A stretch of DNA of 64,000 bases, taken from the NCBI GenBank assembly GCA_002269645.1, contig NIVC01001069.1, positions 186,001 to 250,000 of the forward strand. The letters run 5' to 3'. Position numbers and translations under genes: made by a program. The stretch comes from Macrostomum lignano. Lineage: Eukaryota. The notes beneath the pieces are model-generated. The model was given only the letters and a program-made list of their open reading frames with translations, was not told the DNA's origin and did not search any database. Shown piece after piece: positions 4,884 to 48,030 of the stretch (its first letter is position 1; each line of letters starts with the position of its first letter).

Positions 4884-7800
4884 TGTTGTGGGTTGATGGC
4901 TTTGCCATAGACATTTTTGTTACGCGACTGCGTTGATGAATTGAACCATGCTATTGAGTTATGAAATAAATGATAGACGCGTCAGAGGTCAACAGACCGC
5001 TAGACTGACAATAGCTAAAGGCTAAAGCCAAAAGCACAACAGTGGCGTCGGCAAGCATAGGCTACGAAAATGCCTGGAAGTACGCCAGCATCGCCAACTA
5101 AAGGAGTTGGTAAAACGATTTCGAGCGACAAAGCACCACCGCTTGCGATCTCGTCGAAATCAGTCCAAGCGACAAAGTCGGCAACAGCGACAGCGCAGAA
5201 CCCAAGCGCACAAGTATCGAGAGGACAGCAAGTTGACATCGAAAAACTCGATGAAAGTTCGAACTTCCAGAGGTGGTTGGACCGATTCACACTGTGCAGC
5301 GAAATCAACGGCTGGCAGGACAACACGAAAAACAAGCTGCTGCTGATGAAGCTCAGCACCAAGCTGTACGACGCATTGGCCGATCGAGCCGCTCCCAAGA
5401 AGCCGGGAGAAAAGAGCTTCGATGAACTGACCAAACTACTGGCCAGCATCCTGGAACCAAAGACGTTCGTCATGGCTGAGAGATTCAATTTCCAGCATAT
5501 CACTCGCACGGCATCAATGAGCATTCGTGAGTATGCACAGCAACTCTGCATGTAGGCAGACAAGTGTCAGTTTGGCCTATCCAGAGATGAGAGACTGAGA
5601 GATCAGCTCGTATTCGGTTTGAATGACAAGGTGGCCATCAGCAAGTTATTGGAACAGGACTTCAGCACTCTCACGTTTGAGACAGCTATCAACATCGCTG
5701 AGGCGCACCAGAACCTATCACAAACGCAAATACTAAAGGGTTGCACCAGTCAGCCGCAGTCTTCTGAAGTAATGAAAATTTCAGCATCGGTGGCCAGAGG
5801 CTCCCACTCTACAAGCTCCAAGTGTGGCAGATGTGGCACAATGCATGGCTCCAATGGAGGGTGTCCTGCGAAAGGAAAAACGTGCAACAAATGTGGCATG
5901 CAAAACCACTTCGCAACAGTTTGCAAAACGAAATCAACTGGTTTTGGCAAAGGCCGAAAATCGTTCAAAAGCCCGTCAGCATCTGGTCAATTTAGGCGAG
6001 CTGCAGTGTGGCCAAGGACCACAAGCTTTGTAGATGCAAGCGAAGCTGAACAGGAGGATTGTTTTCACATTCGACATCCCGTTGATAGCTACACCGTGCC
6101 TGTTAGGCTCAGACACACGAGCGGGTCGATGCTTAGCGTGAACGCACAAATCGATACTGGGGCAGGAGTTTCGGTAATGTCAAAAACGATCTGGAAACGA
6201 TTGGGTTGTCCAAAGCTGACACCTACAGACACTGTTCTGACAACATACGCTGATACGCAGATGAAGGTCTTTGGAACACACGACACTGAGTTGGAGTACA
6301 ATGACGAGTTCATTCCAATCACATTCTTCATTGTGGAATCGCAGAGAAACTTTGTTCTGGTTGGCCGAGACAAGCTCAATTTCACGCTAAACGCTGTAGA
6401 CAACAGCTGCACATCGGCAACCCAGTCATGCGAATTTCCACCAGTAACTCTTAAGATCAAGGAAGGAACCACTCCAATTCATTGCAAACCCAGGCCGCTA
6501 CCCTTCGCACTCAGACAGGGAGTCAAGGATGAAATCGATCGGTTGCTTGAAGAAGACACCATCAAGCCCGTCAAGTTCAGTGAATGGGCCTCACCAATTG
6601 TCGTGGTCAAGAAACCTTCTGGAAAGCTCAGACTTTGCGTCGACTACAAGGTGACAATCAATTCTCATCTTATCAGCGATTCATATCCGATGCCTGCACC
6701 TGACGAAGTGATTGCAACTGCTGCTGGCAGCCGGATATACACTCGTCTGGACCTAGAGAAAGCTTATCACCAGATCCCACTAGATGAAGCTTCCAAAGAG
6801 CTGACAGTAATGTCAACACCATTTGGGATGTTCGCTTTCAACAAGCTTCCATTCGGAGTGAAAACAGCACCTGCGATCTTCCAGCGGTACATTAGCCAAG
6901 TCCTACAAGGAATTCCTGGCGTCATTGCCTACGTAGACGACATATTGATATGCGGCAAAGGCGTAGAACAATTGGCAGTTCGTGGGACGGAAGTATTGCA
7001 TCGACTAAACCAGCAAGGATTGAAGATCAACACGGCGAAAAGTGAATTCCGCAAGACTTCGATCAAGTTTCTAGGCTACTTATTGGAAGGAGATCAGCTC
7101 AAGCCGGACCCAGCCAAAGTGAAGGCAATCCAGGACATGACACCACCGCAGAACGTTGGCGAGCTTGAATCCTTCCTGAGTCTCGTAAATTTTAGCGGCA
7201 AGTTCATCAGAAACCTAGCTGCACTGACCAAGCCTCTCAATCGACTAAGAAAGAAAAATGAGGACTTCGAGTGGACAAAGGAGTGTCAAATAGCATTTGA
7301 CGAAATCAAAGTCACTCTCTCTGATCAATCAAGTCTTCAAATATTTGATCCGGAGAAGCCCATTGAACTGGAATGCGACAGTTCTCAGCGAGCTCTGGGC
7401 GGAGTGTTGACACAAAGCGGTCAAGTCGTGCTGTACATGAGCAAGACTCTGTCTGACGCCGAAACAAAATATTCGCAAATAGAGCGTGAAGGCCTGGCAC
7501 TGGTTTGGTGCATTCAAAGATGCCATCGGTTCTTGTATGGCCGGAGGTTCACACTGATAACTGATCACCGGCCCCTCACATACATATTCGCGCCAGACAA
7601 ACAGCTGCCCACCAGAGTTTCAGCTCGACTACAACGATGGGCAATCATGCTAGCTGCTTATGACTATGTCATACAGTATCGACCATCAAAGCTAATGCTG
7701 TCGGATGCGCTATCTCGACTGGTGCCCGCTAAGCCGAATGCACAGACAGCATCGATCGGACTCCTCGAAGCTGACAACCCGGGAGTAATTCAGCTGGATC

Positions 7801-9223
7801 GCATTGCACACGCAACCAGAGAGGACCCGGAGTTCAGATGCCTGGGCGCAGCCATAATTAACAATAATCTATTTGACGACCCACACCTACTCAGCTACTC
7901 GAAGGTTCAAGATGAGCTAACTGTCAACGATGGAATTATTTACAGAATGAACAGAATTGTATTGCCTCGTGTCCTGAGAGAAACTGCCCTGGCAGCTGTA
8001 CACTCAACGCACCTTGGGGTGGAAAAGTCAAAGTCAATTTTGAGGGAACAGTTCTGGTGGCCACAGATGGACCGTGACATCGCTGACTACATTGGACGAT
8101 GCAACGTGTGCAACGCGTACAAGTCCAGAAATAAGAACTTTCGGCACTCGTGGCCAGAACCTGACAACCCCTGGGAGCGAGTGCACATTGATTTTGCCGG
8201 TCCGATAGAGGGCAAGTACCTACTCATCATTGTGGATGCGCACTCGAGCTACCCGGAAGTCTTCATCACGAGCGACATGAAGGCCGACACAGTCATTTCC
8301 AGACTTAGAAGATTGTTCTCACAACAGGGGGTGCCCAAGTGTCTCGTGTCAGACAACGGCCCTAGTTTTGTGAGCGAAGCGGTGACCGGCTGGCTCACCC
8401 AGATTGGCTGTTCGCACATCACAACGCCCGCCTACCATCCACAGAGCAACGGCATTGCAGAGCGAATGGTGCGAACCGTCAAAGAGACAATCAAGACCAA
8501 TGGTTTATCCCAAAGAAGTATTGACAGATTTCTACTGTTCTACAGAGCTGCCAAAGAGAAGCAGCAAGCATCACCGTCCGAGTTGTTGAACGGCAGACAA
8601 ATAAGACTCCCCATCTCGGAGAGCAGCACTCAGTCCAAGTGGATCCCAGGAGAATCACTCATCTACCGTGCATCGAGTTCTCATGAGCCACGAACTGTGA
8701 GATTCGCCAAAATGCTTGGCAGCAACACAGCAGTCGTCACCACAGAGACTGGACGAAATCTAAAGACCCACCTCGATCAACTACGAATCGGTGAGGTACC
8801 TGAGGCTCACGGAACTACGGAAATGGGGGATTCCAAGCCCGGTGGCAACGGTCCAAGTGACGACGGCCAACAGACGCGTCCGTCATCGACAGACACTGAG
8901 ATACTACCGGGAACAGAACAAGCTGAGAGAGCACAACAGCAACAGACTGAGGCCGGAGTTCAATCCAAGCCGTCACCCAGGCGAAGCGAACGCTTGGCCA
9001 AGAAAACTAGAATTTTTTATCGCACCTGAGTGATAATTGTACACCTACCTATAGAAGAGGGAGGGTGTTGTGGGTTGATGGCTTTGCCATAGACATTTTT
9101 GTTACGCGACTGCGTTGATGAATTGAACCATGCTATTGAGTTATGAAATAAATGATAGACGCGTCAGAGGTCAACAGACCGCTAGACTGACAATAGCTAA
9201 AGGCTAAAGCCAAAAGCACAACA
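4884..9223 (+). mobile_element. Full-length Ty3/Gypsy LTR retrotransposon (Mag-like), antisense in ankyrin gene intron
   Basis: Identical 158-bp LTRs 4884-5041 and 9066-9223 (TGTTG...CAACA); 5-bp TSD GGGGA (4879-4883, 9224-9228); putative PBS TGGCGTCGGC at 5043; PPT AGAAGAGGGAGGG 9053-9065. Confidence 0.97.
5070..9029 (+). CDS. Gag-Pol polyprotein in one frame with one in-frame TAG at 5553-5555
   Basis: Gag core; two Cys/His knuckles (CGRCGTMH...CNKCGMQNHFATVC); protease IDTGA; RT YVDD; RNase H ECDSS; integrase HHCC plus DFAG/SDNG/AERMV. ORFs 5070 and 5619 are in the same frame. Confidence 0.93.
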
Positions 9224-9883
9224 GGGGAGAAGGGAGAGGAGGGGGGAGAAGGGAGAAGAGGGGAGAGAAGGGGGAGAAGGGAGAGGAGGGGGGAGAAGGG
9301 AGAGGAGGGGGAGAAGGGAGAGGAGAGTTCAGATGGGAAAGGGAGAGGAGAAGAGGATCGGAGAAGTGGGGAGAAGAGGAACTGGGAGAAATTTCAGGTA
9401 CATGGAAAAGATTGAGATGGGCAAACTACAAGCGTGCATATGGGATGAAGCAAGCATCAGACTCTACATGGATTATGTACACAAAGCATCTGCAGCAGGC
9501 TGCATAGTCTGAGTAAACGCTCCGCATTCCGGATAAAGAAATGCAAATAAAAAGAGCTGTATGATGAGACAGGGTCAGGAACTGCGGCAAAGGCATGGCA
9601 GGTTAGTGGGAGAAACCAGCTGAGAACATCGGGACATGCAAGACAAGGCTAAACGCAATCAGAGAACATGGAAGCCACTTGTAGCGCATTGCAATCAGAT
9701 TATGCTTGAGGCTATAGATGCAGGACAGCCTGCATGCAACAGTGCAGTATACTCGCATAATCCATTTGTTTATTGTGACCATTGGCCATACGTAGATGAA
9801 TTCAGTTTATAGTTAAACAAACTTTGAATAGAATTGTAATATTGCTTGTATAAGAAGCCCGTAAATCTTTGTTCCTTTATTTG

Positions 9884-10254
9884 GCACCAAGGGGCGCCAG
9901 CACCAAGGGGCGCCAGCACCAAGGGGCGCCAGCACCAAGGGGCGCCAGCACCAAGGGGCGCCAGCACCAAGGGGCGCCAGCACCAAGGGGCGCCAGCACC
10001 AAGGGGCGCCAGCACCAAGGGGCGCCAGCACCAAGGGGCGCCAGCACCAAGGGGCGCCAGCACCAAGGGGCGCCAGCACCAAGGGGCGCTAGCACCAAGG
10101 GGCGCCAGCACCAAGGGGCGCCAGCACCAAGGGGCGCCAGCACCAAGGGGCGCCAGCACCAAGGGGCGCCAGCACCAAGGGGCGCCAGCACCAAGGGGCG
10201 CCAGCACCAAGGGGCGCCAGCACAAAGGGGCGCCAGCACCAAGCGGCGCCAGCA
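9884..10254. repeat. 16-bp minisatellite (GGGGCGCCAGCACCAA)n, ~23 copies
   Basis: Tandem unit read directly; one base longer than the unit at 2586. Confidence 0.97.
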
Positions 10255-12744: not shown

Positions 12745-12953
12745 GGTTCAGTCCAAGGACTGTGGGGTCGCTACACACAGCCTCAATTACCCCAGCTAAT
12801 GCTGGCACCCATTTTACAGCTGGGTGAACTGAAGCAATGCATGGAGTTAAGTGTCCTACTCAAGGGACATAAATTGTCCGAGTGAGACGGGAATTGAACC
12901 CCCGACCTTTCAGTGGTGAGTCAGACGCTCTGACCACTAAAAGCTACAACCCC
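12745..12953 (-). mobile_element. tRNA-derived SINE with CORE-like central domain, copy 2
   Basis: Minus strand: TAGCTTTTAGTGG A box, GGTTCAATTCC B box, CCTTGAGTAGGACACTTAAC...CAGCTGTAAAATGGG resembling the MIR/CORE motif. Confidence 0.82.
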
Positions 12954-13991
12954 GTAAAGACGAAAAAAAGTATAATTTTTATTATGTAACAATCAATGAC
13001 AAAGTCAATAACGCTCGTACTTGGAACTTAGTGTCTGGATCATAATTAGTACATCTCTTGTATCGCATCTACTACTGCTAATAGCAATGTCAAGTTTTTT
13101 TAACTTGTTAAATTAACAAAACTTTGACAACGACCCACACAAAGCAATCAATAAAGTTTGATAGGAAATGTCTCGTGAAACATTACGGAATGATAAAAAT
13201 ATACATCTTAATACTGCAATATATTTTAATAGATAGTAATAAACAATATCCAGAAGAATTAAAACAAGCCACAGATGAAAATCATATTGCTAGATGCATA
13301 AAATGAACAATTAAACAAGGCAAGGCACATATTGGTTTCAGTTCACAGCGAGGATCACAATAAAAATTAATGACTAATAATCTGGCTAGTTAAGGTGCTT
13401 TGACCTTCAATTGTCTAGTGCAAAAGAAAAGTACGACGGTACCTAAAAATAATAAAATCTTTGGTTTTATCACCAGACCAAAGGAATCGACCGAATTGGA
13501 AATTAAATAAAGCTATTGGGCTCATTATTTATGCAATAATTATGCAATAGTGAGCAAAGAGGATTACATAACTCGTAAATGTTTATTTATTAGTTTTTTA
13601 TTAACAGCTAAGCTGTTTTAAATAACAGAGCTATTGCACACAATCGACATTAAATACTGGATTGCAGACCGTGCAATGACGTCATCGCAACCACTATTTG
13701 ACCTTCAATTGTCCACAATTGGCACCGCAGCACTGCGGTCTGGCGCGCCGCTCTGATGTACCTGCTTGCCAGCGACCCAGGCTCTGCCTTGTGCAATTAA
13801 AGCCATAGAAGTGTACACGTTTAACTATGAAATAAAGTCATAGGGCCGCTGTACACTCTTGTGTGCCTGCTCAGGGGAGTCGGCGGAATGGGCAGTAATG
13901 CCTCTCGCCGCTTAAAGTGCGTCAGGGTGCACAAAGCCCTAGCCTATCTATATAACTAAACTAACACCGATCCTATTTGACCTTCAACTGT

Positions 13992-14990
13992 TCACCTGTC
14001 GGTTTTATCCGCCCCAGTAGCACCAGAAGAATCCGCCGACACAAGCGCCATAGCGGCAGTATAAACGCTAGTAAAAGAATAGCCTTCAGCTCCGAGCATG
14101 TGGCTATCGTCTAGAAAGTACTCAATGTACTTTAAATGGCAGAGCAGAGCCGGCTGGCCGGAGGTGGCCACAACGAATGCCAGCACGGGCACCAGATCGT
14201 CGGCGCCGATTTCGCCGGCCCCGGCGGCCGATCGCATCGCCGCTAAGGCGCTGTTCAGAGTGTCCTGCAACAGTTGGCACTTTGCCAAAGGCGTACCAGG
14301 CGAGGCGCACAGTCGGCGCAGTAGGTCGCGCGATTCCGACAACGGCGCTAAATCGGTTGTTAAACTGTCGAATCGTTGACCGACGCCGCACAGTTTAGCA
14401 ACGGATTCTAACTGAGAGGAGACCTGACAGTCTGCCTGTTTGTCCCCTGCTACTTCGATCATGACAGCGGCCAGTCTGCTGAGATGAGGCCGCAGTACGA
14501 TGGCCAGTCGGGCCAGGGCGCACGACTCCACCCGGGGGGAGAGCAGGCGGCCAGACAGCAGCGCGGAGCACGCGGCCACCTCGTGACTGGCTAATCCGCC
14601 ATCGCTGCCGCCGCCGCCGCAGAGAAGACAGGCGGCCGGAGCCAGCCGACGCAACAGGCGACAGGCGACGCGGCCGACTCTGGCTGAGGAATCGTCGCGA
14701 TCGGCGTCGAGCAGCAGACTGTCGGTCAGGCTCAATAGTTCAACGTCGGGAGCCTCGACAGAGTCGGCAGGGGTTGGCGGCGCTACGGACAGCCGATTGG
14801 CCAGCCGGTCGGAGAATGCGGCAATAAAAGCAGCCAGTGGGTGGTCGGGAATGGACAGCACGTACTGCAGGCGGGCAGGCGGCTGGCCGGCGGATTTCTG
14901 GTACAGCTGATCCCGGTACAGCACCAGGTAGTCGAACTCGCTGCACCGGCAGTACAGGGTGCGCAGCTCGGCGGCATCGATGGCCTTTTC
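13992..14990 (-). CDS. VPS9D1: VPS9 domain-containing protein 1, last coding exon
   Basis: VPS9 GEF motifs IGADDLVPVLAFVV and GAEGYSFTSVYTA; LSIPDHPLA matches the VPS9D1 LSLPDHPIA motif; acceptor cttcaag| at 14991, phase 0. Confidence 0.88.
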   Translation of the reverse strand, partial: EKAIDAAELRTLYCRCSEFDYLVLYRDQLYQKSAGQPPARLQYVLSIPDHPLAAFIAAFSDRLANRLSVAPPTPADSVEAPDVELLSLTDSLLLDADRDDSSARVGRVACRLLRRLAPAACLLCGGGGSDGGLASHEVAACSALLSGRLLSPRVESCALARLAIVLRPHLSRLAAVMIEVAGDKQADCQVSSQLESVAKLCGVGQRFDSLTTDLAPLSESRDLLRRLCASPGTPLAKCQLLQDTLNSALAAMRSAAGAGEIGADDLVPVLAFVVATSGQPALLCHLKYIEYFLDDSHMLGAEGYSFTSVYTAAMALVSADSSGATGADKTDR

Positions 14991-15007
14991 CTTGAAGGGG
15001 GTGGGGG

Positions 15008-15535
15008 CACCGAATCTTATCGCCTCTGACACTGAATCTTATCGCCTCTGACAGTGAATCGTATCGCCTCTGACAGTGAATCGTATCGCCTCTGACACTG
15101 AATCTGATCGCCTCTGACACCGAATCTGATCGCCTCTGACACTGAATCTTATCGCCTCTGACACCGAATCTTATCGCCTCTGACACTGAATCTTATCCCC
15201 TCTGACACTGAATCTTATCCCCTCTGACACTGAATCTTATCGCCTCTGACACCGAATCTTATTGCCTCTGACACCGAATCTTATCGCCTCTGACACCGAA
15301 TCTTATCGCCTCTGACACCGAATCTTATCGCCTCTGACACCGAATCTTATCCCCTCTGACACTGAATCTTATCGCCTCTGGCACCGAATCTTATCGCCTC
15401 TGACACCGAATCTCATCACCCCTGACATCGAATCTTATCTATCTAACCTGACACCGAATCTGATCACCCCTGACATCGAGTCTTATCTATCTAACCTGAC
15501 ACCGAATCTGATCACACCTGACACCGAATCTTATC
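15008..15535. repeat. 22-bp minisatellite (GACACCGAATCTTATCGCCTCT)n filling the VPS9D1 intron
   Basis: Tandem unit read directly; starts ~17 bp from the acceptor. Confidence 0.95.
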
Positions 15536-15600
15536 CTAGCAATAATTATCAAACACTGACTGACACAAAGGAAAATATCACAGAATCCTTAAAGCCAAAC

Positions 15601-16266
15601 CTCATCAGACTCCACAGGTCCGTCATCATATTCGAATACCTCCGTATGCAGCTGAAACAGGCGGCTACAGTCGGTCCGTTTAGCCAGCAGATCATCCTGC
15701 AGAGCCTGTTCAAAAGCCGCCTGTTTCGGCTTAGCCAACTGCAAATTCTCTTCTATTCGGCGTTGCAAAGCCAGGTGTAAATTAACCCGGCGTGGGTCAC
15801 CTTTGGGCAGGGCGCTGGTCCTAGCCAGATGGGCGCTGTAGAGCCGCCTGTTCAGCTCCATCGCTTCTTGCATGGGGGATTTACGCGGACCAAGATAGGC
15901 TGGAGCTGGAGGAAGTGGAGAAGAGGCAGTACCCGCAAGCTGCGCCGGAGTCTGGGCCGCTGCTTGATGAGGCGGCGGCTTACCCGGTTGCTGGGGTGTC
16001 CGATTACCAGGAGGGGCGGCATTTAATAACGCGTCGCTTCGTTCTAAACACAATTTCATCAATCGCATCAACTTCCGCTGCTCATCCAACTGTTGAGCTG
16101 ATAATTGAGCAACTGGGACAGCCTGAGAGGCGGCAGCAGCAGCTGAAGCAACAGCCGCAGCCAGGACCTGCTGCATGCAGGCTAAATAAGGGAAATAGCA
16201 TCGTTCGCTTTGGCCTTGTTCGTCCTGACGGAGAACGTCTAGGACTGCCGTCACGGCCGTCTGTGA
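15601..16266 (-). CDS. VPS9D1: VPS9D1 first visible coding exon (MIT-like N-terminus); no ATG, starts at a phase-0 acceptor
   Basis: LMKLCLERS, SPMQEAMELNRRLYSAH and LALQRRIEENLQLAK parallel human VPS9D1 motifs; donor GTTTGG at 15600; acceptors ctgcag| 16267 and cacag| 16261; in-frame TAA at 16284-16282. Confidence 0.85.
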
Positions 16267-16384
16267 CTGCAGCGGAATTTTTTAATCAAATCAAAATTTG
16301 CGGTATAATAAGTTATTCTTTTACGCCAATAATAGTTCCAATCCAAAAAGCACTGCATCTTGAGAACCTTTCCGGGAGTCAATC

Positions 16385-16915
16385 ATCTAGATAAACTTTC
16401 CTAGAAACCGTTATGTAGATAAACTTTCCTAGAATCTGTCATCTAGAAAACTTTTCCTAGAATCAGTCATCTAGAGACCTTTTCCTAGAATCTGTCATCT
16501 AGAGAACTTTTCCTAGAATCAGTCATCTGGAGAACTTTTCCTAGAATCTGTCATCTGGAGAACTTTTCCTAGAATCAGTCATCTAGAGACCTTTTCCTAG
16601 AATCAGTCATCTGGAGAACTTTTCCTAGAATCTGTCATCTAGAGAATCTTTCCTAGAATCAGTCATCTAGAGACCTTTTCCTAGAATCTGTCATCTAGAG
16701 AATCTTTCCTAGAATCAGTCATCTAGAGACATTTTCCTAGAATCAATCATCTAGAGAATTCTTTCTTAGAATCCATCATCTAGAACTTTTCCTAGAATCC
16801 ACCATCTAGAGAATTCTTTCCTAGAATCAGTCATCTAAAGAACTTTTCCTAGAATCAATCATCTAGAAAATCATTCCAAGAATCTGTCATCTATACAACC
16901 ATTCCTAGAATCAAT
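16385..16915. repeat. 28-bp minisatellite (TCTAGAGAACTTTTCCTAGAATCAGTCA)n between rpL13 and VPS9D1
   Basis: Tandem unit read directly. Confidence 0.92.
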
Positions 16916-17058
16916 AAAGAACATTTCTCAGAATTCCTAGAAAAAACATTTTAGAAACTTTCGTATTTCCGCATAACAGAAAAAAAAACTAGAAAGACTT
17001 GAAATTTTTAATCCATCAATCAAATTGGGCACGCGCAAGTGTATTTAACGGTGTCAAT

Positions 17059-17064
17059 TTTATT
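17059..17064 (-). terminator. Putative rpL13 polyadenylation signal AATAAA, followed by a U-rich tract at ~16975-17000
   Basis: AATAAA on minus ~85 bp after the rpL13 stop; TCTTTCTAGTTTTTTTTTCTG downstream. Confidence 0.6.
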
Positions 17065-17147
17065 CAAGTTGTTAGTTAAGCTTTTAACGCACAAAGTGAG
17101 AAACAGCCACCATTAGATCAGCTATATAGCTCAGCTTAGTTAACTCA

Positions 17148-17771
17148 TCACTTCTTCTCCTTCTCAGCCTGCTCGGCTTTCTTCTTGCGCAGTCCGTCGA
17201 GCCGCTTGTTCGCCCGAGCCTGTCGGATAGCGTGGAAGGCGTGGAACTTCTTGTCGTCCTCCGATTGGACGCGAGCCTTCACGCGGCGCAGTCGGCGGCC
17301 CGGAGCCACCACAGGCGGCAGCGGACGCTGTACAACAGACCGGAGCTCCTCCTCCGAAGCTTCGCCAGCCTTCGGCGCCTTGGGATTCTTCGGGAATAGG
17401 ATCAGCTTGCCGCGGTAGGCCTTCAATCGCTGGGCATTGCGCTGCAGACTCTCGGCTGAGCGATTCTTGCGCCGATGATCAACGGCGATGCCGATGGTTT
17501 GGGCGAGTCGGCGATTGATGCCGGCGGCCTTGAGCTCGTCCAGGCTGAAGCCGCGGCCGGGGCGGACACGCATGTTGTACCTGATGGTCTGGCAGCGGAC
17601 CACCGGGCGAAGAGGCCCGTTCACTGGCCGGGGCGCTATAAGGCGCGCCTTCTCGACGCGAGCTTTACGACGGCGCTCCTTGCGAGCGGGCTGGTTGAAC
17701 CAGGTGCGAACAAAGCGCTGCCAGTCCTTGTGGAAGTGGGCATTCGGTATGATGTTCTTGCGCTTCACCAT
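17148..17771 (-). CDS. RPL13: 60S ribosomal protein L13 (eL13), 207 aa, uninterrupted CDS
   Basis: [31 protein letters not shown]...[14 protein letters not shown]...[17 protein letters not shown]; ATG at 17771; acceptor ttttccag|cag| just upstream. Confidence 0.98.
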
Positions 17772-17919
17772 GGCGACCGGAACTGCTGGAAAATGTGCAA
17801 TTGCAAAAGTCAAACTTTGTTATTACTATGAGTAGGTTGACTGGATTATTTGTTTTTTTATTGAAGAAGTTAGATCTAAACTATTAGTTAGAGGACTCAA
17901 ATGGGGACCTTTGACCAAC

Positions 17920-20708: not shown

Positions 20709-20949
20709 TCCCCTAGGAGCCTAGGCCTACTTTAAAAATCCTGGATCTATTACGGGTTATTTCAAGGTTTTTTTGCTGAAAAATTTAGTTTTTTGTGGCC
20801 ATGGTGGGGTTAGTTAATTGGCAGTTAATGAAGTGATCATAGGCAAAAATAAAAACTTTTAAAAAATGAGCTCTAGCCTCCAAGTACAACTTACAAGTCT
20901 AATATTAGACTTGTAAAACATATTTATAAATCAACCTACAAAGGCTGCC

Positions 20950-22075: not shown

Positions 22076-22932
22076 GTAAGGCGGGCGGTCGGGAGTCGGG
22101 ACTAACAATAGCTGGCTATGCCACTATGCTAGCCTGCTTAAAGATGAACATCGAATACTAAACTTTGTCTTATACTAAGTTACTAAGTTTTTACATATTT
22201 TGCCGTTAGATAAGGTCTAAGTCTAAGCCCTAAAAGGGAGACTAAGGTCTAGGCCTACTATCTGATGATCTAAATATTTGATAATTAGGCTTAAGTCAGA
22301 AATTTTAGGTCTTTATATTTTATTAGGCCTCATTGCCCCCCTAGGCCAAACTTTAAAGTTCACTAATAAAATATAAAAAATAATTGTTTCATCTTAGACT
22401 TAGGCCTAGTTAGAATTAGATTAGAATTATAGGCCTATATAAAATTAAAATAGGCCTATTAAAATAGGCCTGGGGGGACTAATATTAGAAAAAAGCAAAG
22501 AATATTTCATATTTGCATTTCATATGCCCTTATGATACTTTTTATGTATTATGTAAAGATGCATTGCCCAAAATTTCTCCTCATGGCAATGACCCATGGC
22601 AATGGCCGGCCATTGCCTAGAATTCCAATTCCAATGCAACCAATTAATTCAAGCCAGTTTTTATCCAGCATCTTGCAAAGCATATTTTGCATCAGTCAAT
22701 TCAAAACGTTTATTTTAAGATGTAAATAATTAAACTGGCACAGGAATTGCAAAATCGACAGTACAAAAAGCACAGTGTCAGTATACCATGTAAACTTTTT
22801 TGTCGATGATGAACATCATACTGGTTGTTAAAGTCATTAAATAAAAAATATTAAACTAGACTGTCGTTCTTATTCTTTCAGTAATTCTACGAGTACAATT
22901 TACTGATTCCTGTAGAAGTAAAGATTGCATGC

Positions 22933-24521
22933 CTAATTAATGGAACATCCATGAAAGGTGCAATTGTTGAAGGCAAACTTTATACCAACAGAATAGGCAG
23001 CTTCAGTGCTAACACTAACCTCCATTGATACTGCAATCTCACCGACGATCTCAATAGCATCAGCATGTTCGGGTGGCCCAGCTTCTTGCTCTAGATCATG
23101 ACGATTCAACGCCACCTGAACAGACTCACTCGTCTTTTGAAGCAACCGGTCGCGACGCTTGGCTAGGTACCTCCTAGTCGTTCGCTCGCTCAGCTGTCCA
23201 GTAATGCTCATTATATCGCTCATGCTGTGCCCTGCCACCTCGAGATCGCATATTCGCGTGACCCTGTTTTAGAGTGCAAATTTATATAGTTGGATTCATG
23301 AGTAATTGGTAACATAACATGTATCATAACATAATTAAAGTTACTATTATTAATTTATCAGTCTTAGCAAATGCAATGATTCGTGTAGGTCTTCGCAAGT
23401 CCCGCCTTCGTACTCAAGTTTCTCATGAAGCCACTCAGATAATTCTGAGTTAGAATTATCAGAATTATCAGAATCAGAATTATCAAAATTATTAGAGTTC
23501 CATGGTTCTGCTTCGAGGAGAAAACAGGGCCTCCATCGTTGCGGCTTGCCAAAGGATGAGGAAACAGATTGTTGTCCTTCGTTGTAACTGGAAGCAGCTT
23601 GAGGTATTTCTCCACCTTTTCCACGTTGTAAATTCTGGCCTGCTTGTTGTCTGGCTGCTTCTTGGCCTTCTCTGGATCTGCTAAATTATTTTTCGAGGGC
23701 AATGGAGGCAGACAGTAAAACGGCTTTCCTTCAGAGTCGATGTGCAATTGAAGTGAGCTTCTATCCTTCAAGAACTTGAGGTGCTCCTGGCCTCGCTCGC
23801 CAAAGCTGTATATGATGTAGAATAAGAATTTGTCCTACTCAACTTCAGCTGTGCTGCCTTGGAAGTAGATCATCAGCTTCCTCATGTCCCCCTCCTCGAT
23901 TGGCTCAAACTGCTGCGTCCTCCCACCACTCTGGTGAAAGTCTCGAACCTTCACATGCAGCATGCTATTTGCAGAAGAAAAGTCTTCTCCATTGATGATG
24001 TCAACGGTTAGCTTCTTGATCATCCGCAAATAGCGCTGCAGTCCAGCCCTGATGCACACCAGCAATGCGGGCAAGTAAGGTTCGCCGTCAATCTTCTTCA
24101 GTTTAAAGTAGAAGTAGCGAATGTATTGGTTGAGCACCGAATTCGGAATGGTTTGTAAATAGCGCTGAAGATTTTCCTCTGTGAGGAATGTCTTGAACCG
24201 CTGTCCATGGCTAATCATCTGCTTCCTGCTGTCTGCTGGTAGGCTGTCAATCTTGGCAATGTCCATGGCGCTGATATCTACGCCGCCTTCCTGCAAGAGC
24301 GGCAGATGCTCATCGGGCTCCGGCTTCTTTTGAATGAATTCGAGAAATCTAGCAAACTCGTTGTCCCTTCTGTCATTGTAAGAAGCCTCCAAAACAAAAT
24401 TCAATTCGTCCTTAGTCACGTTGCCCAGCTCACTGCAGGGCAAATGCTTCCAATTAATGAGCAGTGCCTCCATCTCTGCAGCCGTCCGCTTTTCTCTATC
24501 TGAGATTTGACCTCTTGACAT
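22933..24521 (-). mobile_element. Decayed Crypton-type tyrosine recombinase (DUF3504/ZMYM-like), with a remnant intron
   Basis: One frame 24521-23364 with TAG at 23837-23835: FKLKKIDGEPY...LQRYL...FGERGQEHLKFL...FMRNLSTKAGLAKTYTNHCI; after an AT-rich intron ending aaacag| it continues VTRICDLEVAGHSMSDIMSITGQLSERTTRRY. Confidence 0.82.
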
Positions 24522-24757
24522 GCAAATATTTATATTTGTAATTAATTTAGGGGTGGGTGCAGAGTAAGGGGTGGGTGACTTCAGGTGTGCGACTTAAAGG
24601 TGAGACATAGGCGAGGTGGAGGTAACCTTATCTCAAACCCCCTTAGAAGCATTGACTGATAAGAATTCAAGATAGTGTACATAAAGTGCGTAGATTATGT
24701 AAGAGTTTTGAAATTTTAAGTCAATTGCATTGCTATTGCTATTGCATTGGTATCACA

Positions 24758-26716
24758 TTGTATCTATAGTGGTAGCTAATTTTTCCCATAGTTTATTTAT
24801 ATCAATCAATATCTATAGCTACTTAATTTCCTATAACTTCCTTAAACTTTAAATTGATATTAATTCCAATAGCAATGGTTCTTCTATCACTTAATAAAAT
24901 ATAATGAGAAAATAAAGAATTAAAGCAATAGTTTACTTAAAACTCATTTATAATATATTATTTATTTATAGTATATTCATGTGTATTATACTATAAATAA
25001 ATGTGTATTATACCCTCCATTGCATTGCTATTTTCCATGCCATGCCTTACCTTTATATCATAGATATATTAGGCCTAGGCCTAGCCTATAGAATTAAGCA
25101 ACTTCTAGCTAGCTAGGGCCTATTGGCTTAGCCAATAATAAAATTTATTAGCTATTAGCTATTAGCTATTAGTTTACTAGCTAACCTAATTTGAGCTGTC
25201 TACTAGGCCCTAGCATCTAGAATTTTATTGTTTCCCCTTGACTTTACACCTACATGGTTATACAAATTAAATCAAGTAAGGGCCTAATTATCTTGCTAGT
25301 TCGATGCAATAAGTTTTTTATTAGTTGGCTATAAATCATTTTAATATAGGGCCTAATCAAATTTAAATTAGCTATGAAGTTTTTCACTATATGCAATTAA
25401 ATTAGGCTTAGTAATAGTTAGTTGGATACAAATGCATTAAAAAGGCCTATTTAAAACAGTTTTCAAATATTTAATCCCACTTAGCAATGAGCTAGAACTT
25501 AATAAAAATATATTTATCATCTTGGGCACATTTGATATGTTTTGGGGAAGAAATTATAAAAATCAACTGAAAGCCTTTTGGGAGATTATCATTTGTATAT
25601 AAGCAAGCAAACATATATAAACTTTTTATTTTTAGTATATTTCTTGCTCTTAGGCAATTTACTGCTCTAAGGAAATCTTCTTTAGACTATTAAGTAATTT
25701 TCACTTTCAGTAGGTTTTAATTCTTCCAATGTTAGGGTTTCTTCTAAAAAAATAAAATAAATAAACTGGATAACAAACTTGATTAGTAAGCCTATCTTTC
25801 CAAATTGGAAGTTGATTTTAAAAGTTTACAAGCAGGTAGAAATACCAAGTTGTTGCTCTTTTAGTTTTTAGGCTTTTATTTATATTGGCTGTAAAGTCAG
25901 TTTCATACCATTATATAGGCCCTACCATTAGAACAAATTTATTTATAAAATATTTTTTGGAAACACTATAATTCAATGAAAATTAAGGTTAAGCTTTAAA
26001 TGCAGTATTTTAAAAAAAGAATAAGTTTTTAAAAAGAATATACAAGAAAAGAATAGGCCCTATACTAGGTCTATATAATGAATGCTATATTACTAGGCCT
26101 ATAAAAAGAGCACTATGTCACTAGCATATTCAAAAGAAAATAGTTAATAATTTTTAGTATATGGATTAATTGATCAATATTACTAAATTAAACAAGCGAA
26201 CTAGATATACAAATTATTTTCTTGTAAGTATATTTCAAGTATTTTAAGTATATACTTCAGGAAATAACTTTAGGACTTAAAGACTATTTGAGCTTTTAAT
26301 TTCATTGACTAGTAAAAAGTAAATCAATAAAAATAACTAGGTAAGTAGATGTTGTTAGTGGTATTACAAACCTTTTTAAAAGGAACTTTAAGTCATAAGT
26401 TAGAAAGATTTTCAATGCTTTATATTATGAATAAGATGAATATGATTGGGATAATAAGGTTAAATATAGATATAAAAGGTTTTATTTGAACACATGAATA
26501 TACTATAAATAAATAATATATTATAAATGAGTTTTAAGTAAACTTTTGCTTTAATTCTTTATTTTCTCATTATATTTTATTAAGTGATAGAAGAACCATT
26601 GCTATTGGAATTAATATCAATTTAAAGTTTAAGAAAGTTATAGGAAATTAAGTAGCTATAGATATTGATTGATTTAAATAAACTATGGGAAAAATTAGCT
26701 ACCACTATAGATACAA
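24758..26716. repeat. Pair of ~227-bp inverted repeats (24758-24984 and 26490-26716) around ~1.5 kb of AT-rich DNA; probable non-autonomous DNA transposon
   Basis: Reverse-complement match with only a few mismatches seen by eye; no TSD recognised. Confidence 0.8.
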
Positions 26717-28500: not shown

Positions 28501-28976
28501 TACAAGCGTCGAGTCTAATGCAATGTAAACATGTACGTAATGCACACGGTCTGCTGGTAAATCAAGTTCTCCAGATTGTTTATATAACGCCAAAATCCAA
28601 TAGAGTGAGGTACTTTTAATGCGTGTACGAGCGTACATGCAAAGTTATTCAAATAAAAACTCTGAGCTCCTCAACAACTGCTGATATGCATTTAGGCACA
28701 CGATTTAGGCACACGTGCTCGAAAACTGTACCCAATCAATGTGCCGCAGTGTAACTAGAGAAGTCGGTAATATTGTTGAATAATTCAAAGACATTTTCCG
28801 TTCGAGGCACGCATGCATTTACTTGAAACAAACGTGTCTTATTCCCACCCGGAGGCTAGCGTATAAAATAACCCTCAAAAACACTCATGCAGGTGTTTCA
28901 GCCCTACTCCTCGAGTGGTTCTCTTCTCTACTAGCGACTCGTGACCAGCCCTACTCGTTACCAGTCAAGTTTAACA

Positions 28977-29564
28977 ATGCAGCAATTCTGTTTACCCAGA
29001 CTGACCGTCCCGACGTTCACCCCGATGACGCCAGACGGGGAGTTGGACCTGGACAAGATCCCAGCCTACGCCCGCCTGCTCAGCCAGTCCGGGGTGCGGA
29101 GCGTCTTCATCTGCGGCAGCACCGGCGAGTTCCCCAGTCTCAGTCTGGACGAGCGCAGGCGTGTTCTCGAAGCCTGGTGTCAGGCCCGCGCTGACGGCCT
29201 AATCGACACGGTGACCGCTCACGTGGGCACCTGCTGTCTCAAGGACACCATCCTACTGGCCAGGCACGCCGTGCAAAAGTGCAACGCGGACGCTGTAGCA
29301 TCCGTGGCTCCCTGGTACTTTCCTATTGACCAGATCGACGCTACAGTGGAACTGCTGGCCAAGGTGGCTGCTGAGTGCGACGGCAAGCCCTTCTATTATT
29401 ACCACATCCCGATGTTCACCAACAGCAAGCTAGACGTGGCCCAGCTGATGCGCCGGGCCGCTGCACTTGTGCCGAACCTGGTCGGGCTGAAGTTCACGGA
29501 CTCTTCGCTTAGTCAACTGGCCGCCTGCTCGGAGGTTGTTGCACCCGACGGGCGACAGATGCAG
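28977..29564 (+). CDS. NPL: N-acetylneuraminate lyase (DHDPS/NAL family), exon 1
   Basis: TFTPM, GSTGE, FYYYHIP and LKFTD catalytic motifs; donor CAG|GTGCAG; possible TATA (TATAAAA) near 28863. Confidence 0.88.
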
Positions 29565-29624
29565 GTGCAGGCGCGAGTTTAAGTTGCCTTTATGGTTGAT
29601 TTATTATACTCTACTCAGACCTTC

Positions 29625-39049: not shown

Positions 39050-42000
39050 GGGAGATTGTGAAGGGAGGGAGAAGGTGATAAAGAGAGGGAGATAAAAGCG
39101 AGGGTAAAGATGGTGATGCGAGGGGAAAGATGATGGAAGGGAGGGGAAAGATAATGGAAGGAGGAAGATGATAGTAGGGGAAGAAGATCAACGGAGAAGA
39201 AAGATGGTAAAGGGAGGGGAAAGATGGTAAAGGGAGGGGAATGATGGTAAAGGGAGGGGAAAGATGGTAAAGGGAGGGGAAAGATGGTAAAGGGAGGGGA
39301 AATATGGTAAAGGGAGGGGAAATATGGTAAAGGGAGGGGACAGATGGTAAAGTTAGGGGAAAGATGGTAAAGGGAGGGGACAGATGGTAAAGGGAGGGGA
39401 AAGATGGTAAAGGGAAGGGGAAAGATGGTAAAGGGAGTGGAAAGATGGTAAAGGGAGGGGAAAGACGGTAAAGGGAGGGGAAAGACGGTAAAGGGAGGGG
39501 AAAGATGGTAAAGGGAGGGGAAAGATGGTAAAGGGAGGGGAAAGATGGTAAAGGGAGGGGAAAGACGGTAAAGGGAGGGGAAAGATGGTAAAGGGAGGGG
39601 AAAGATGGTAAAGGGAGGGGAAAGACGGTAAAGGGAGGGGAAAGACGGTAAAGGGAGGGGAAAGATGGTAAAGGGAGGGGAAAGATGGTAAAGGGAGGGG
39701 AAAGACGGTAAAGGGAGGGGAAAGATGGTACAGAGCGTGGAAAGATGGTAAAGGGAGGGGAAAGACGGTAAAGGGAGGGGAAAGACGGTAAAGGGAGGGG
39801 AAATATGGTAAAGGGAGGGGACAGATGGTAAAGTTAGAGGAAAGATGGTAAAGGGAGGGGAAAGATTGTTAAGGGGAGGGGAAAGATGGTAAAGGGAGGG
39901 GAAAGATGGTAAAGGGAGGGGAAAGATGGTAAAGGGAGGGGAATGATGGTAAAGGGAGGGGAAAGATGGTAAAGGGAGGGGACAGATGGTAAAGTTAGAG
40001 GAAAGATGGTAAAGGGAGGGGAAAGATTGTTAAGGGGAGGGGAAAGATGGTAAAGGGAGGGGAAAGATGGTAAAGGGAGGGGAAAGATTGTTAAGGGGAG
40101 GGGAAAGATGGTAAAGGGAGGGGAAAGATGGTAAAGGGAGGGGAAAGATGGTAAAGGGAGGGGAATGATGGTAAAGGGAGGGGAAAGATGGTAAAGGGAG
40201 GGACAGATGGTAAAGTTAGAGGAAAGATGGTAAAGGGAGGGGAAAGATTGTTAAGGGGAGGGGAAAGATGGTAAAGGGAGGGGAAATATGGTAAAGGGAG
40301 GGGAAAGATGGTAAAGGGAGGGGAAAGATGGTAAAGGGAGGGGAAAGATGGTAAAGGGAGGGGACGGATGGTAAAGTTAGGGGAAATATGGTAAAGGGAG
40401 GGGACAGATGGTAAAGGGAGGGGAAAGATGGTAAAGGGAGTGGAAAGATGGTAAAGGGAGTGGAAAGATGGTAAAGGGAGGGGAAAGACGGTAAAGGGAG
40501 GGGAAAGACGGTAAAGGGAGGTAAAAGATGGTAAAGGGAGGGGAAAGATGGTAAAGGGAGGGGAAAGATGGTAAAGGGAGGGGAAAGATGGTAAAGGGAG
40601 GGGAAAGATGGTAAAGGGAGGGGACGGATGGTAAAGGGAGGGGAAAGATGGTAAAGGGAAGGGGAAATATGGTAAAGGGAGGGGAAATATGGTAAAGGGA
40701 GGGGACAGATGGTAAAGTTAGGGGAAAGATGGTAAAGGGAGGGGACAGATGGTAAAGGGAGGGGAAAGATGGTAAAGGGAAGGGGAAAGATGGTAAAGGG
40801 AGTGGAAAGATGGTAAAGGGAGGGGAAAGACGGTAAAGGGAGGGGAAAGACGGTAAAGGGAGGGGAAAGATGGTAAAGGGAGGGGAAAGATGGTAAAGGG
40901 AGGGGAAAGATGGTAAAGGGAGGGGAAAGACGGTAAAGGGAGGGGAAAGATGGTAAAGGGAGGGGAAAGATGGTAAAGGGAGGGGAAAGACGGTAAAGGG
41001 AGGGGAAAGACGGTAAAGGGAGGGGAAAGATGGTAAAGGGAGGGGAAAGATGGTAAAGGGAGGGGAAAGACGGTAAAGGGAGGGGAAAGATGGTACAGGG
41101 AGTGGAAAGATGGTAAAGGGAGGGGAAAGACGGTAAAGGGAGGGGAAAGACGGTAAAGGGAGGGGAAATATGGTAAAGGGAGGGGACAGATGGTAAAGTT
41201 AGAGGAAAGATGGTAAAGGGAGGGGAAAGATTGTTAAGGGGAGGGGAAAGATGGTAAAGGGAGGGGAAAGATGGTAAAGGGAGGGGAAAGATGGTAAAGG
41301 GAGGGGAATGATGGTAAAGGGAGGGGAAAGATGGTAAAGGGAGGGGACAGATGGTAAAGTTAGAGGAAAGATGGTAAAGGGAGGGGAAAGATTGTTAAGG
41401 GGAGGGGAAAGATGGTAAAGGGAGGGGAAAGATGGTAAAGGGAGGGGAAAGATTGTTAAGGGAGGGGAAAGATGGTAAAGGGAGGGGAAAGATGGTAAAG
41501 GGAGGGGAAAGATGGTAAAGGGAGGGGAATGATGGTAAAGGGAGGGGAAAGATGGTAAAGGGAGGGGACAGATGGTAAAGTTAGAGGAAAGATGGTAAAG
41601 GGAGGGGAAAGATTGTTAAGGGGAGGGGAAAGATGGTAAAGGGAGGGGAAATATGGTAAAGGGAGGGGAAAGATGGTAAAGGGAGGGGAAAGATGGTAAA
41701 GGGAGGGGAAAGATGGTAAAGGGAGGGGAAAGATGGTAAAGGGAGGGGACGGATGGTAAAGTTAGGGGAAATATGGTAAAGGGAGGGGACAGATGGTAAA
41801 GGGAGGGGAAAGATGGTAAAGGGAGTGGAAAGATGGTAAAGGGAGTGGAAAGATGGTAAAGGGAGGGGAAAGACGGTAAAGGGAGGGGAAAGACGGTAAA
41901 GGGAGGTAAAAGATGGTAAAGGGAGGGGAAAGATGGTAAAGGGAGGGGAAAGATGGTAAAGGGAGGGGACAGATGGTAAAGGGAGGGGAAAGATGGTAAA

Positions 42001-42330
42001 GGGAGGGGACGGATGGTAAAGGGAGGGGACAGATGGTAAAGGGAGGGGAAAGATGGTAAAGGGAGGGGAAAGATGGTAAAGGGAGTGGAAAGATGGTAAA
42101 GGGAGGGGAAAGACGGTAAAGGGAGGGGAAAGACGGTAAAGGGAGGTAAAAGATGGTAAAGGGAGGTGAAAGATGGTAAAGGGACGGGACAGATGGTAAA
42201 GGGAGGGGAAAGATGGTAAAGGGAGGTGAAAGATGGTAAAGGGACGGGACAGATGGTAAAGGGAGGGGAAAGATGGTAAAGGGAGGGGAAAGATGGTAAA
42301 GGGAGGGGAAAGATGGTAAAGGGAGGTGAG
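39050..42330. repeat. 20-bp G-rich minisatellite (GGGAGGGGAAAGATGGTAAA)n, ~3.3 kb, NuMA intron 4
   Basis: Tandem unit read directly. Confidence 0.96.
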
Positions 42331-45711: not shown

Positions 45712-48030
45712 CTAACTGACTCCCACTGACTCACTAGGAATCCCACTGACTCACTCACTGGGAATCCCACTGATTCACTCACTAGGAATCCCACTGATTC
45801 ACTAGGAATCCCACTGACTCATTCACTGGGAATCTCACGTGATTCACTAATAATCCCACTGACTCATTCACTGGGAATCTCACGTGATTCACTAATAATC
45901 CCACTGACTCATTCACTGGGAATCCCACTGATTCACTAGTAATCCCACTGACTCATTCACTGGGAATCCCACTGATTCACTAGGAATCCCACTGACTCAT
46001 TCACTGGGAATCTCACTGATTCACTAGTAATCCCACTGACTCTCTCACTAGTAATCCCACTGATTCACTAGGAATCCCACTGACTCATTCACTAATAATC
46101 CCACTGACTCATTCACTGGGAATCCCACTGATTCACTAGTAATCCCACTGACTCATTCACTGGGAATCCCACTGATTCACTAGGAATCCCACTGACTCAT
46201 TCACTGGGAATCCCACTGATTCACTAGTAATCCCACTGACTCATTCACTGGGAATCCCACTGACTCACTAGGAATCCCACTGACTCATTCACTGGGAATC
46301 CCACTGATTCACTAATAATCCCACTGACTCATTCACTGGGAATCCCACTGATTCACTAATAATCCCACTGACTCATTCACTGGGAATCCCACTGATTCAC
46401 TAGTAATCCCACTGACTCATTCACTGGGAATCCCACTGATTCACTAGTAATCCCACTGACTCATTCACTGGGAATCCCACTGATTCACTAGTAATCCCAC
46501 TGACTCTCTCACTAGTAATCTCACTGATTCACTAGGAATCCCACTGACTCATTCACTGGGAATCTCACTGATTCACTAGTAATCCCACTGACTCATTCAC
46601 TGGGAATCTCACTGATTCACTAGGAATCCCACTGACTCATTCACTGGGAATCCCACTGATTCACTAGGAATCCCACTGACTCATTCACTGGGAATCTCAC
46701 TGATTCACTAGGAATCCCACTGACTCATTCACTGGGAATCTCACTGATTCACTAGGAATCCCACTGACTCATTCACTGGGAATCTCACTGATTCACTAGG
46801 AATCCCACTGACTCATTCACTGGGAATCCCACTGATTCACTAGGAATCCCACTGACTCATTCACTGGGAATCTCACTGATTCACTAGTAATCCCACTGAC
46901 TCTCTCACTAGTAATCCCACTGATTCACTAGGAATCCCACTGACTCATTCACTGGGAATCCCACTGATTCACTAGGAATCCCACTGACTCATTCACTGGG
47001 AATCTCACTGATTCACTAGTAATCCCACTGACTCTCTCACTAGTAATCCCACTGATTCACTAGGAATCCCACTGATTCACTAGTAATCCCACTGACTCAT
47101 TCACTAATAATCCCACTGACTCATTCACTGGGAATCCCACTGATTCACTAGGAATCCCACTGACTCATTCACTGGGAATCTCACTGATTCACTAGTAATC
47201 CCACTGACTCTCTCACTAGTAATCCCACTGATTCACTAGGAATCCCACTGATTCACTAGTAATCCCACTGACTCATTCACTAATAATCCCACTGACTCAT
47301 TCACTGGGAATCCCACTGATTCACTAGGAATCCCACTGACTCATTCACTGGGAATCTCACTGATTCACTAGTAATCCCACTGACTCTCTCACTAGTAATC
47401 CCACTGATTCACTAGGAATCCCACTGATTCACTAGTAATCCCACTGACTCATTCACTAATAATCCCACTGACTCATTCACTGGGAATCCCACTGATTCAC
47501 TAGTAATCCCACTGACTCATTCACTGGGAATCCCACTGATTCACTAATAATCCCACTGACTCATTCACTGGGAATCCCACTGATTCACTAGTAATCCCAC
47601 TGACTCATTCACTGGGAATCCCACTGATTCACTAATAATCCCACTGACTCATTCACTGGGAATCCCACTGATTCACTAATAATCCCACTGACTCATTCAC
47701 TGGGAATCCCACTGATTCACTAGTAATCCCACTGACTCATTCACTGGGAATCCCACTGATTCACTAGTAATCCCACTGACTCATTCACTGGGAATCCCAC
47801 TGATTCACTAGTAATCCCACTGACTCATTCACTGGGAATCCCACTGATTCACTAGTAATCCCACTGACTCATTCACTGGGAATCCCACTGATTCACTAGT
47901 AATCCCACTGACTCATTCACTGGGAATCCCACTGATTCACTAGTAATCCCACTGACTCATTCACTGGGAATCCCACTGATTCACTAGGAATCCCACTGAC
48001 TCATTTACTGGGAATCCCACTGATTCACTC
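45712..48030. repeat. Composite 44-bp minisatellite (AATCCCACTGACTCATTCACTGGG + AATCCCACTGATTCACTAGT)n, NuMA intron 1
   Basis: Alternating 24- and 20-bp subunits read directly. Confidence 0.93.

Follow-up and report, generated by a model that had tools for sequence, protein, structure and literature searches.

What supplies the first codon of a protein whose conserved N-terminus is preceded in the genome by a splice acceptor and a stop codon? The question is raised by a 64,000-nt stretch of the genome of the flatworm Macrostomum lignano (assembly Mlig_3_7, GCA_002269645.1; scaffold NIVC01001069.1:186,001-250,000; hereafter the window, numbered from its first letter), in which the ribosomal protein gene rpL13 and an orthologue of VPS9D1 both lie on the minus strand with no gene between them. 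A first-pass annotation had read VPS9D1 as the downstream cistron of an operon that takes its Met from the AUG ending the spliced leader (SL). Every test that we ran agrees with an SL-AUG start, and the spacing of the two genes fits the published operon criterion, whereas the support drawn from ATG-plus-donor combinations in the gap was wrong. From the genome and its public annotation, we consider it likely that the SL AUG starts VPS9D1, and we lean slightly toward the SL-AUG start and the operon being correct together.

In the explanation that we favor, a promoter upstream of rpL13 would drive a single precursor RNA covering both rpL13 and VPS9D1. The rpL13 mRNA would be cut and polyadenylated shortly past its AATAAA (17064-17059), and the SL would then be trans-spliced onto the unpaired acceptor CTGCAG at 16267/16266, giving the VPS9D1 mRNA both its cap and its sole usable start codon. 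The predicted product, M-SQTAVTAV..., is a protein of 555 amino acids with an MIT-like N-terminus and a VPS9 C-terminus.

The VPS9D1 coding sequence and its missing start codon

VPS9D1 (Mlig015965.g1) consists of two coding exons and a single cis intron (Table 1), and the two-exon translation equals the public protein PAA72661.1 from residue 2 onward. That entry and PAA62346.1, named BOX15_Mlig015965g1/g2, are both partial. The VPS9 domain (PF02204) was matched in Pfam at 9.2e-15 with exon 2 and at 1.1e-14 with the full protein. An exhaustive HMMER search with exon 1 as the query returned orthologues (P0011-P0014) that align from residue 10-11 of their own sequence with query residue 6-7 onward, among them VPS9 domain-containing protein 1-like of Patiria miniata (P0013), and the reciprocal search reaches NCBI-named VPS9D1-like proteins. 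Judged by these matches and by its N-terminal MIT-like and C-terminal VPS9 domains, the gene is a VPS9D1 orthologue. It shares with VPS9D1 of other animals an N-terminal MIT-like three-helix domain, a central helical region and the C-terminal VPS9 domain, and is shorter at 555 amino acids, compared to 600-1166 in the orthologues. The intron is occupied almost entirely by a 22-bp minisatellite (15008-15535, Tandem Repeats Finder (TRF)) and has a non-consensus donor, GAG/GTTTGG at 15600.

The first-pass annotation had described the N-terminal exon as devoid of ATG. This holds for the part ahead of codon 31, where no in-frame ATG occurs; further on, the exon contains one ATG in frame (16176) and, ahead of it, another out of frame (16201). 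The in-frame TAA claimed 16 nt upstream was located at 16284-16282, where it closes the frame in the outron. As far as the contiguous genomic sequence goes, VPS9D1 is without a start codon, and its protein needs one from elsewhere.

The similarity to VPS9D1 that had been noticed from the first codons on was recovered in the orthologue alignments. SQTAVTAV aligns with echinoderm LQTAMKAV (QTAVTAV compared to QTAMKAV), and residues D16, Y25, Y28, L29 and C31, all located before the first genomic Met, are invariant. Only 4-16 non-conserved residues stand ahead of the QTAMKAV-type motif in the orthologues, whereas the M. lignano protein would start one residue ahead of the conserved helix. An alignment-based AlphaFold2 model, built on a small alignment and usable for the N-terminal 85 residues, predicts helices at 2-17, 22-48 and 58-83, with predicted local distance difference test scores of 76-87 over those first 85 residues; a single-sequence model was set aside as its confidence was too low. 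The top fold matches of the alignment-based model are the MIT domains of VPS4B, MITD1, spartin and katanin, with target-normalized TM-scores of ~0.6-0.68 and E-values that are not significant. A sequence profile search of the PDB gave no meaningful match, and the MIT Pfam profile matches the orthologues weakly. On alignment and model together, codons 1-30 are coding and form helix 1 of a conserved MIT-like domain, which would be lost if translation began at codon 31.

These results bear on the possibility that the first 30 codons are untranslated and that translation begins at the codon-31 ATG (16176), as in the UniProt entry A0A1I8HCE2, or at a near-cognate codon. Codon 31 does hold the first genomic in-frame ATG, and one model based on the older ML2 assembly (P0006) begins there. 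Such a start would forgo a helix that carries family-invariant residues, and a scanning ribosome would come upon the out-of-frame ATG at 16201, with its 39-codon open reading frame (ORF), before reaching codon 31. As to near-cognate codons, the in-frame CTG (16272-16270) is not part of the annotated transcript. We regard an internal or near-cognate start as highly improbable.

The acceptor at the first codon and the spliced leader

The SL of M. lignano is CGGTCTCTTACTGCGAAGACTCAATTTATTGCATG, 35 nt long and ending in ...TTGCATG; ~30% of the genes of this species are trans-spliced and ~15% lie in operons, with [T/C]TNCAG as the motif enriched at trans-acceptors (PMC8629364). The SL is conserved across the genus Macrostomum, where annotators treat its terminal ATG as a start codon and, in other species of the genus, deliberately left it untrimmed (PMC10468722). 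The premise of the first-pass annotation that flatworm SLs end in AUG is correct for the M. lignano SL (PMC8629364) and for every flatworm SL reported (PMC12582326).

Both acceptors at which exon 1 had been said to open, CTGCAG (16272-16267) and CACAG (16265-16261), are in phase 0. The former is the sole [T/C]TNCAG in the gap between the two genes outside the minisatellite that fills most of it, and the G+C fraction steps from 0.30 to 0.60 precisely at 16267/16266. Since the annotated coding sequence (CDS) contains the SQ codons, CTGCAG is favored over CACAG. When the SL is joined at 16267/16266, its terminal ATG comes into frame (ATG-TCA CAG...) and opens an ORF of 555 codons; the predicted N-terminus is (Ac-)M/SQTAVTAVLDVLR.

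The public annotation derives from RNA-seq assemblies that were split at peaks of SL reads and at poly(A) reads; TransDecoder called the ORFs (PMC5730564). PAA72661.1 and PAA62346.1 are flagged as partial and begin with QSQTAV, their CDS starting at 16269 with the acceptor's own CAG (16269-16267). A 5'-partial CDS from 16269 implies a transcript model whose 5' end falls at 16269-16271, with no exon further upstream. The older ML2 models A0A1I8IGN2 and A0A1I8H5R0 (P0001 and P0007) begin with QQSQTAV, and all three genomic copies of the locus in Mlig_3_7 encode LQ (CTG CAG) before SQTAV. The ML2 start looks like an artefact of a noisy assembly, and the QQ itself is unexplained.

Several points weigh against an SL-AUG start. 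The context of the SL AUG is weak, with U at -3 and U at +4. No SL-containing read, cDNA or long read for the junction was found in protein collections or in metagenome contigs, where an exact-match scan returned 0 as expected. The annotated 5' end of VPS9D1 lies 3-5 nt before the acceptor AG, whereas those of the rpL13 copies lie right after their acceptors, an offset that is unexplained. It could stem from SL-tail bases (TGCATG) aligned to genomic TGCAG or from an untrimmed ATG. We rejected the simpler idea that the leading Q is an untrimmed SL ATG mapped onto genomic CAG, as the constant 3-nt offset that it predicts does not fit the rpL13 copies. Also on this side of the balance are the ATGs of the gap itself. 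The first-pass annotation had held that the ATG-plus-donor combinations it checked outside the minisatellite were in phase 1 or 2 or ran into stops; this is inaccurate, as 10 of the 31 ATG...GT combinations in the gap are in phase 0 and free of stops. They start from ATGs at 17113 (three donors), 16949, 16902 (two donors), 16834, 16805, 16442 and 16386. The M. lignano donor consensus GT[A/G]AG occurs nowhere in the gap and hence in none of the ten, a weak argument because the donor of the VPS9D1 intron is itself non-consensus.

A short cis-spliced exon with a true ATG could accordingly join VPS9D1 at 16267, either from the gap (for example, with the ATG at 17113, 16902 or 16805) or from upstream of rpL13, where ATG...GT[AG]AG combinations occur at 20921, 23066 and 27368. 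Besides the ten combinations in the gap, there are four in the 13 kb upstream that have a consensus donor; the 4-16 non-conserved residues of the orthologues suggest that a short extra exon would be tolerable, and a donor off the consensus is evidently used by this gene. Set against this, the evidence-based transcript model reaches no further than the acceptor, both annotated full-length copies are flagged as 5'-partial, the gap offers no GT[A/G]AG, and the number of candidates equals the chance expectation. The candidate at 23066 belongs to a 2.5-kb insertion that the other copies do not have, and the remaining upstream candidates fall in AT-rich non-coding sequence. We judge a hidden upstream exon improbable and retain the SL AUG as the likely initiator.

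rpL13, the repeat-filled spacer and the operon question

The locus is present in three genomic copies with an overall similarity of 96-100%. The first (L001, the contig encoding PAA72661.1) is the window itself, matched at 100% identity across 8 kb. In all three (L001, L002 and L003), called genes place rpL13e directly ahead of the VPS9 gene on the same strand, with no opposite-strand gene between, and the order of rpL13, gap and an identical 120-nt acceptor context is kept. Whether VPS9D1 is without a genomic start codon in all three homeologous copies, and translatable only after SL trans-splicing, we rate as evenly balanced. A second rpL13e paralogue group, Mlig018539.g1-g3, has a CDS 93.8% identical to that of the window, unrelated flanks and no introns, and is annotated as 5'-partial. 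In its member L004 (NIVC01001332.1, rpL13 at 8001-8636), what comes after the gene is not VPS9D1 but a different minisatellite and a methyltransferase gene on the opposite strand. As this group has no downstream VPS9D1, the linkage is confined to one rpL13 locus.

The rpL13 CDS of the window is full length, matching Ribosomal_L13e (PF01294) in Pfam at 1.8e-74 over profile positions 2-180 of 180. No exact database record exists for the 207-amino acid protein as such; the public CDS is a 5'-partial form of 210 amino acids (PVA followed by MVKRK) that begins at 17780. From this, the transcript starts at 17780-17782, right behind the AG of a candidate SL acceptor, TTCCAGCAG. The 5'-partial rpL13 CDSs begin no more than 2 nt past this acceptor in the window and past CTCCAG in the paralogue L004.

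An SL spliced at the predicted site 17783/17782 would create an out-of-frame upstream ORF (uORF) of six codons, ATG TTC CGG TCG CCA TGG TGA (MFRSPW*; window 17769-17782, minus strand), that overlaps the rpL13 start codon and closes at the TGA within ATGGTGAAG. The same arrangement is found in the unlinked paralogue L004 (~7999-8019), where it reads ATG CAG CCG GAC TCA CAA TGG TGA. This suggests that the frame relation between the SL AUG and the rpL13 AUG is conserved. A TTGCATG upstream of rpL13 in L002 was considered as an SL remnant or sign of a retrocopy and dropped, being a 7-nt match only and absent from L001 and L003.

The gap had been put at ~880 bp on the same strand; from the rpL13 stop codon to the VPS9D1 exon it measures 881 bp. 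Each of the three elements that it was said to hold was located: the rpL13 AATAAA (17064-17059), whose offset from the stop codon is the same in all three copies; a U-rich tract, the T9 run at 16988-16980, which could be the U-rich element downstream of the cleavage site; and a 28-bp minisatellite of 558 bp. Gap length is 881, 1301 and 1750 bp in L001, L002 and L003, respectively, because only the copy number of the 28-bp array varies, from 19.9 to 34.9 (L002, ~8937-9913) and 50.9 (L003, ~6619-8044) by TRF. Without the array, the distance from stop codon to acceptor is 323-324 bp in all three copies, and that from the AATAAA is 234-235 bp. The unique segments of the gap, of ~127 and 89 nt (~215 nt), are nearly identical across the copies.

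A pair of M. lignano genes has been counted as an operon when the second gene is trans-spliced and the repeat-adjusted distance is below 1 kb; these distances have their mode near 100 bp, and repeats are reported to inflate operon spacers (PMC8629364). By strand and distance, the rpL13-VPS9D1 pair falls within this definition (323-324 bp repeat-adjusted compared to the 1-kb threshold), which makes an operon plausible. Three further points count on the other side. Some 60% of trans-spliced M. lignano genes lie outside operons (PMC8629364). Co-transcription of a highly expressed ribosomal protein gene with a trafficking gene has no functional ground to be expected. A promoter in the gap would yield an identical sequence picture. 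A model that fuses the two genes (ML2, A0A1I8JR37, P0002) was rejected as evidence of a polycistronic transcript, as its frame-hopping exons have the look of an ab initio artefact on a noisy assembly.

VPS9D1 could thus be initiated by the SL AUG at 16267/16266 with no operon at all, from a promoter of its own in the ~775 bp that separate the acceptor from the poly(A) site of rpL13, the transcribed part being an ordinary monocistronic outron. Such a gene would join the majority of trans-spliced genes that are not assigned to operons, and a trafficking factor probably has other expression needs than a ribosomal protein. Regulatory sequence in the unique parts of the gap would lead one to expect their near-identity; with copies 96-100% similar overall, however, this conservation says little. 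The adjusted spacing of 323-324 bp, moreover, lies within the short mode that has been assigned to operons. A separate promoter seems to us a serious yet fairly unlikely alternative to the shared precursor.

Table 1. Features of the rpL13-VPS9D1 locus, in window coordinates.
Feature	Position	Strand	Basis or remark
rpL13 candidate SL trans-splice acceptor, TTCCAGCAG; exon from 17782	17783..17791	-	Sequence and annotation
rpL13e CDS, intronless, 207 codons plus TGA	17148..17771	-	ORF and Pfam PF01294
rpL13 poly(A) signal AATAAA, 84 nt past the stop codon	17059..17064	-	Same offset in all three copies
T9 run, ~70 nt past the AATAAA	16980..16988	-	Sequence only
28-bp minisatellite, 19.9 copies, 558 bp, most of the gap	16356..16913	-	TRF
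In-frame TAA, 16 nt upstream of exon 1, closing the frame in the outron	16282..16284	-	Sequence
Predicted SL trans-splice acceptor CTGCAG, splice between 16267 and 16266	16267..16272	-	Fits [T/C]TNCAG; identical in L002 and L003
Alternative phase-0 acceptor CACAG, six nt downstream, off the motif	16261..16265	-	Sequence
VPS9D1-like coding exon 1, 222 codons (SQTAV...SDE), MIT-like domain, no start codon of its own	15601..16266	-	Equals PAA72661.1 residues 2-223
Out-of-frame ATG, 39-codon ORF, met before codon 31 by a scanning ribosome	16199..16201	-	Sequence
First genomic in-frame ATG, codon 31, within helix 2 of the conserved domain	16174..16176	-	Sequence and model
Sole cis intron, 610 nt, donor GTTTGG, acceptor TTCAAG	14991..15600	-	Exon join backed by annotated protein
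VPS9D1-like exon 2, 332 codons plus TGA, C-terminal VPS9 domain	13992..14990	-	Pfam PF02204
Two AATAAA, ~390-405 nt past the VPS9D1 stop, candidate poly(A) signals	13586..13602	-	Sequence only

Elsewhere in the window, minisatellites abound: at least 18 long arrays with periods of 15-54 bp (for example, 1-2265, 39095-42326 and 45721-48029) take up about a quarter of the 64 kb, and a 3.2-kb purine-rich array of a 20-mer raises the GC skew to 0.95 at 40-42 kb. The arrays in the gap and the intron are part of this window-wide pattern and not specific to the locus. On the opposite strand, ~5 kb downstream of VPS9D1, a 1136-codon ORF (5619-9029, plus strand) with protease, reverse transcriptase, RNase H and integrase domains represents the pol of a Ty3/gypsy-type long terminal repeat retrotransposon. 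About 1 kb downstream of VPS9D1 lies a tRNA-like sequence (~12880-12955, minus strand; GGGGTTGTAGCTTTTAGTGGTCAGAGCG...GGTTCAATTCCCG), uncalled by ARAGORN and Rfam, that may be the head of a tRNA-derived short interspersed element; no Rfam family or tRNA was called in the window, and no SL RNA gene was found there. Upstream of rpL13, the 2.5-kb segment absent from both other copies (~22555-25028, minus strand) is probably a mobile-element insertion and contains a 228-codon ORF (23835-24521) with a weak QRICH1-domain match (E 7e-4). Farther upstream, on the opposite strand, an ORF matching the DHDPS family at 9.5e-26 (28941-29582, plus strand) is probably an exon of a HOGA1 or N-acetylneuraminate-lyase-like gene.

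Significance and comparison with known systems

Current knowledge of trans-splicing and operons is unchanged by this locus. Both the SL-AUG start and operons have already been described in flatworms, and VPS9D1 would be an ordinary new example; operons with repeat-inflated spacers have been catalogued genome-wide in M. lignano (PMC8629364). We did not find this locus, or individual SL-AUG-dependent Macrostomum genes, described in the literature, and Grudniewska 2016 is silent on the SL AUG. The value of the locus is mainly for annotation: partial models that open with the CAG of a [T/C]TNCAG acceptor likely represent whole proteins, their first codon coming from the SL, in M. lignano and probably in other flatworms. 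Automatic pipelines either cut such models to an internal Met (A0A1I8HCE2) or fuse them to the upstream gene (A0A1I8JR37). The locus also offers a compact test case, in which the SL AUG would be out of frame and open an overlapping uORF in rpL13, and would be in frame and indispensable in VPS9D1. M. lignano is the one flatworm with stable transgenesis. If the start codon has indeed been lost from all copies, VPS9D1, a conserved endosomal-trafficking gene, would extend SL-AUG dependence, for the first time at the level of a single gene, beyond the parasitic Neodermata; use of this AUG as an initiator would then be ancestral to the flatworm phylum, and the operon spacer would have stayed functional through an expansion of its minisatellite from 0.56 to 1.43 kb.

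The closest parallel to the proposed VPS9D1 start is found in Schistosoma mansoni. There, use of the 3'-terminal AUG of the SL as the initiator Met was demonstrated by translation (Cheng, Cohen, Ndegwa & Davis 2006, J Biol Chem 281:733, as cited in PMC9851317 and PMC12582326), and PMC9851317, summarizing Cheng et al. 2006, puts the share of trans-spliced mRNAs with the SL AUG in frame at 28% and the number of cDNAs that require it at more than 40. VPS9D1 shares with that class an SL ending in AUG, an acceptor at the first codon of the conserved coding sequence, an SL AUG in frame and the lack of a genomic AUG upstream of the conserved N-terminus. Whereas the SL-AUG start was shown experimentally in Schistosoma, a neodermatan parasite, it is deduced here from genome and annotation in a free-living, early-branching flatworm (Macrostomorpha).

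With the operons published for M. lignano (PMC8629364; transcriptional units in Wudarski et al. 2017, PMC5730564), the pair has in common the single strand, the [T/C]TNCAG acceptor, the repeat-inflated spacer and a repeat-adjusted distance below 1 kb, and two genes are the commonest operon size. Trans-splicing of the published operons was read from the SL track, whereas that of VPS9D1 is predicted from the acceptor and the partial gene models.

The proposed coupling of upstream 3'-end formation to downstream SL trans-splicing is also that of the SL2-type operons of Caenorhabditis elegans. Ribosomal protein genes are frequent members of C. elegans operons. In contrast to the nematode, M. lignano has a single SL and no specialized SL2, and the spacer, with its minisatellite, spans 0.9-1.75 kb compared to ~100 nt in C. 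elegans. There is no AUG in the nematode SL, whereas that of M. lignano has one, and it is this AUG that would probably start VPS9D1.

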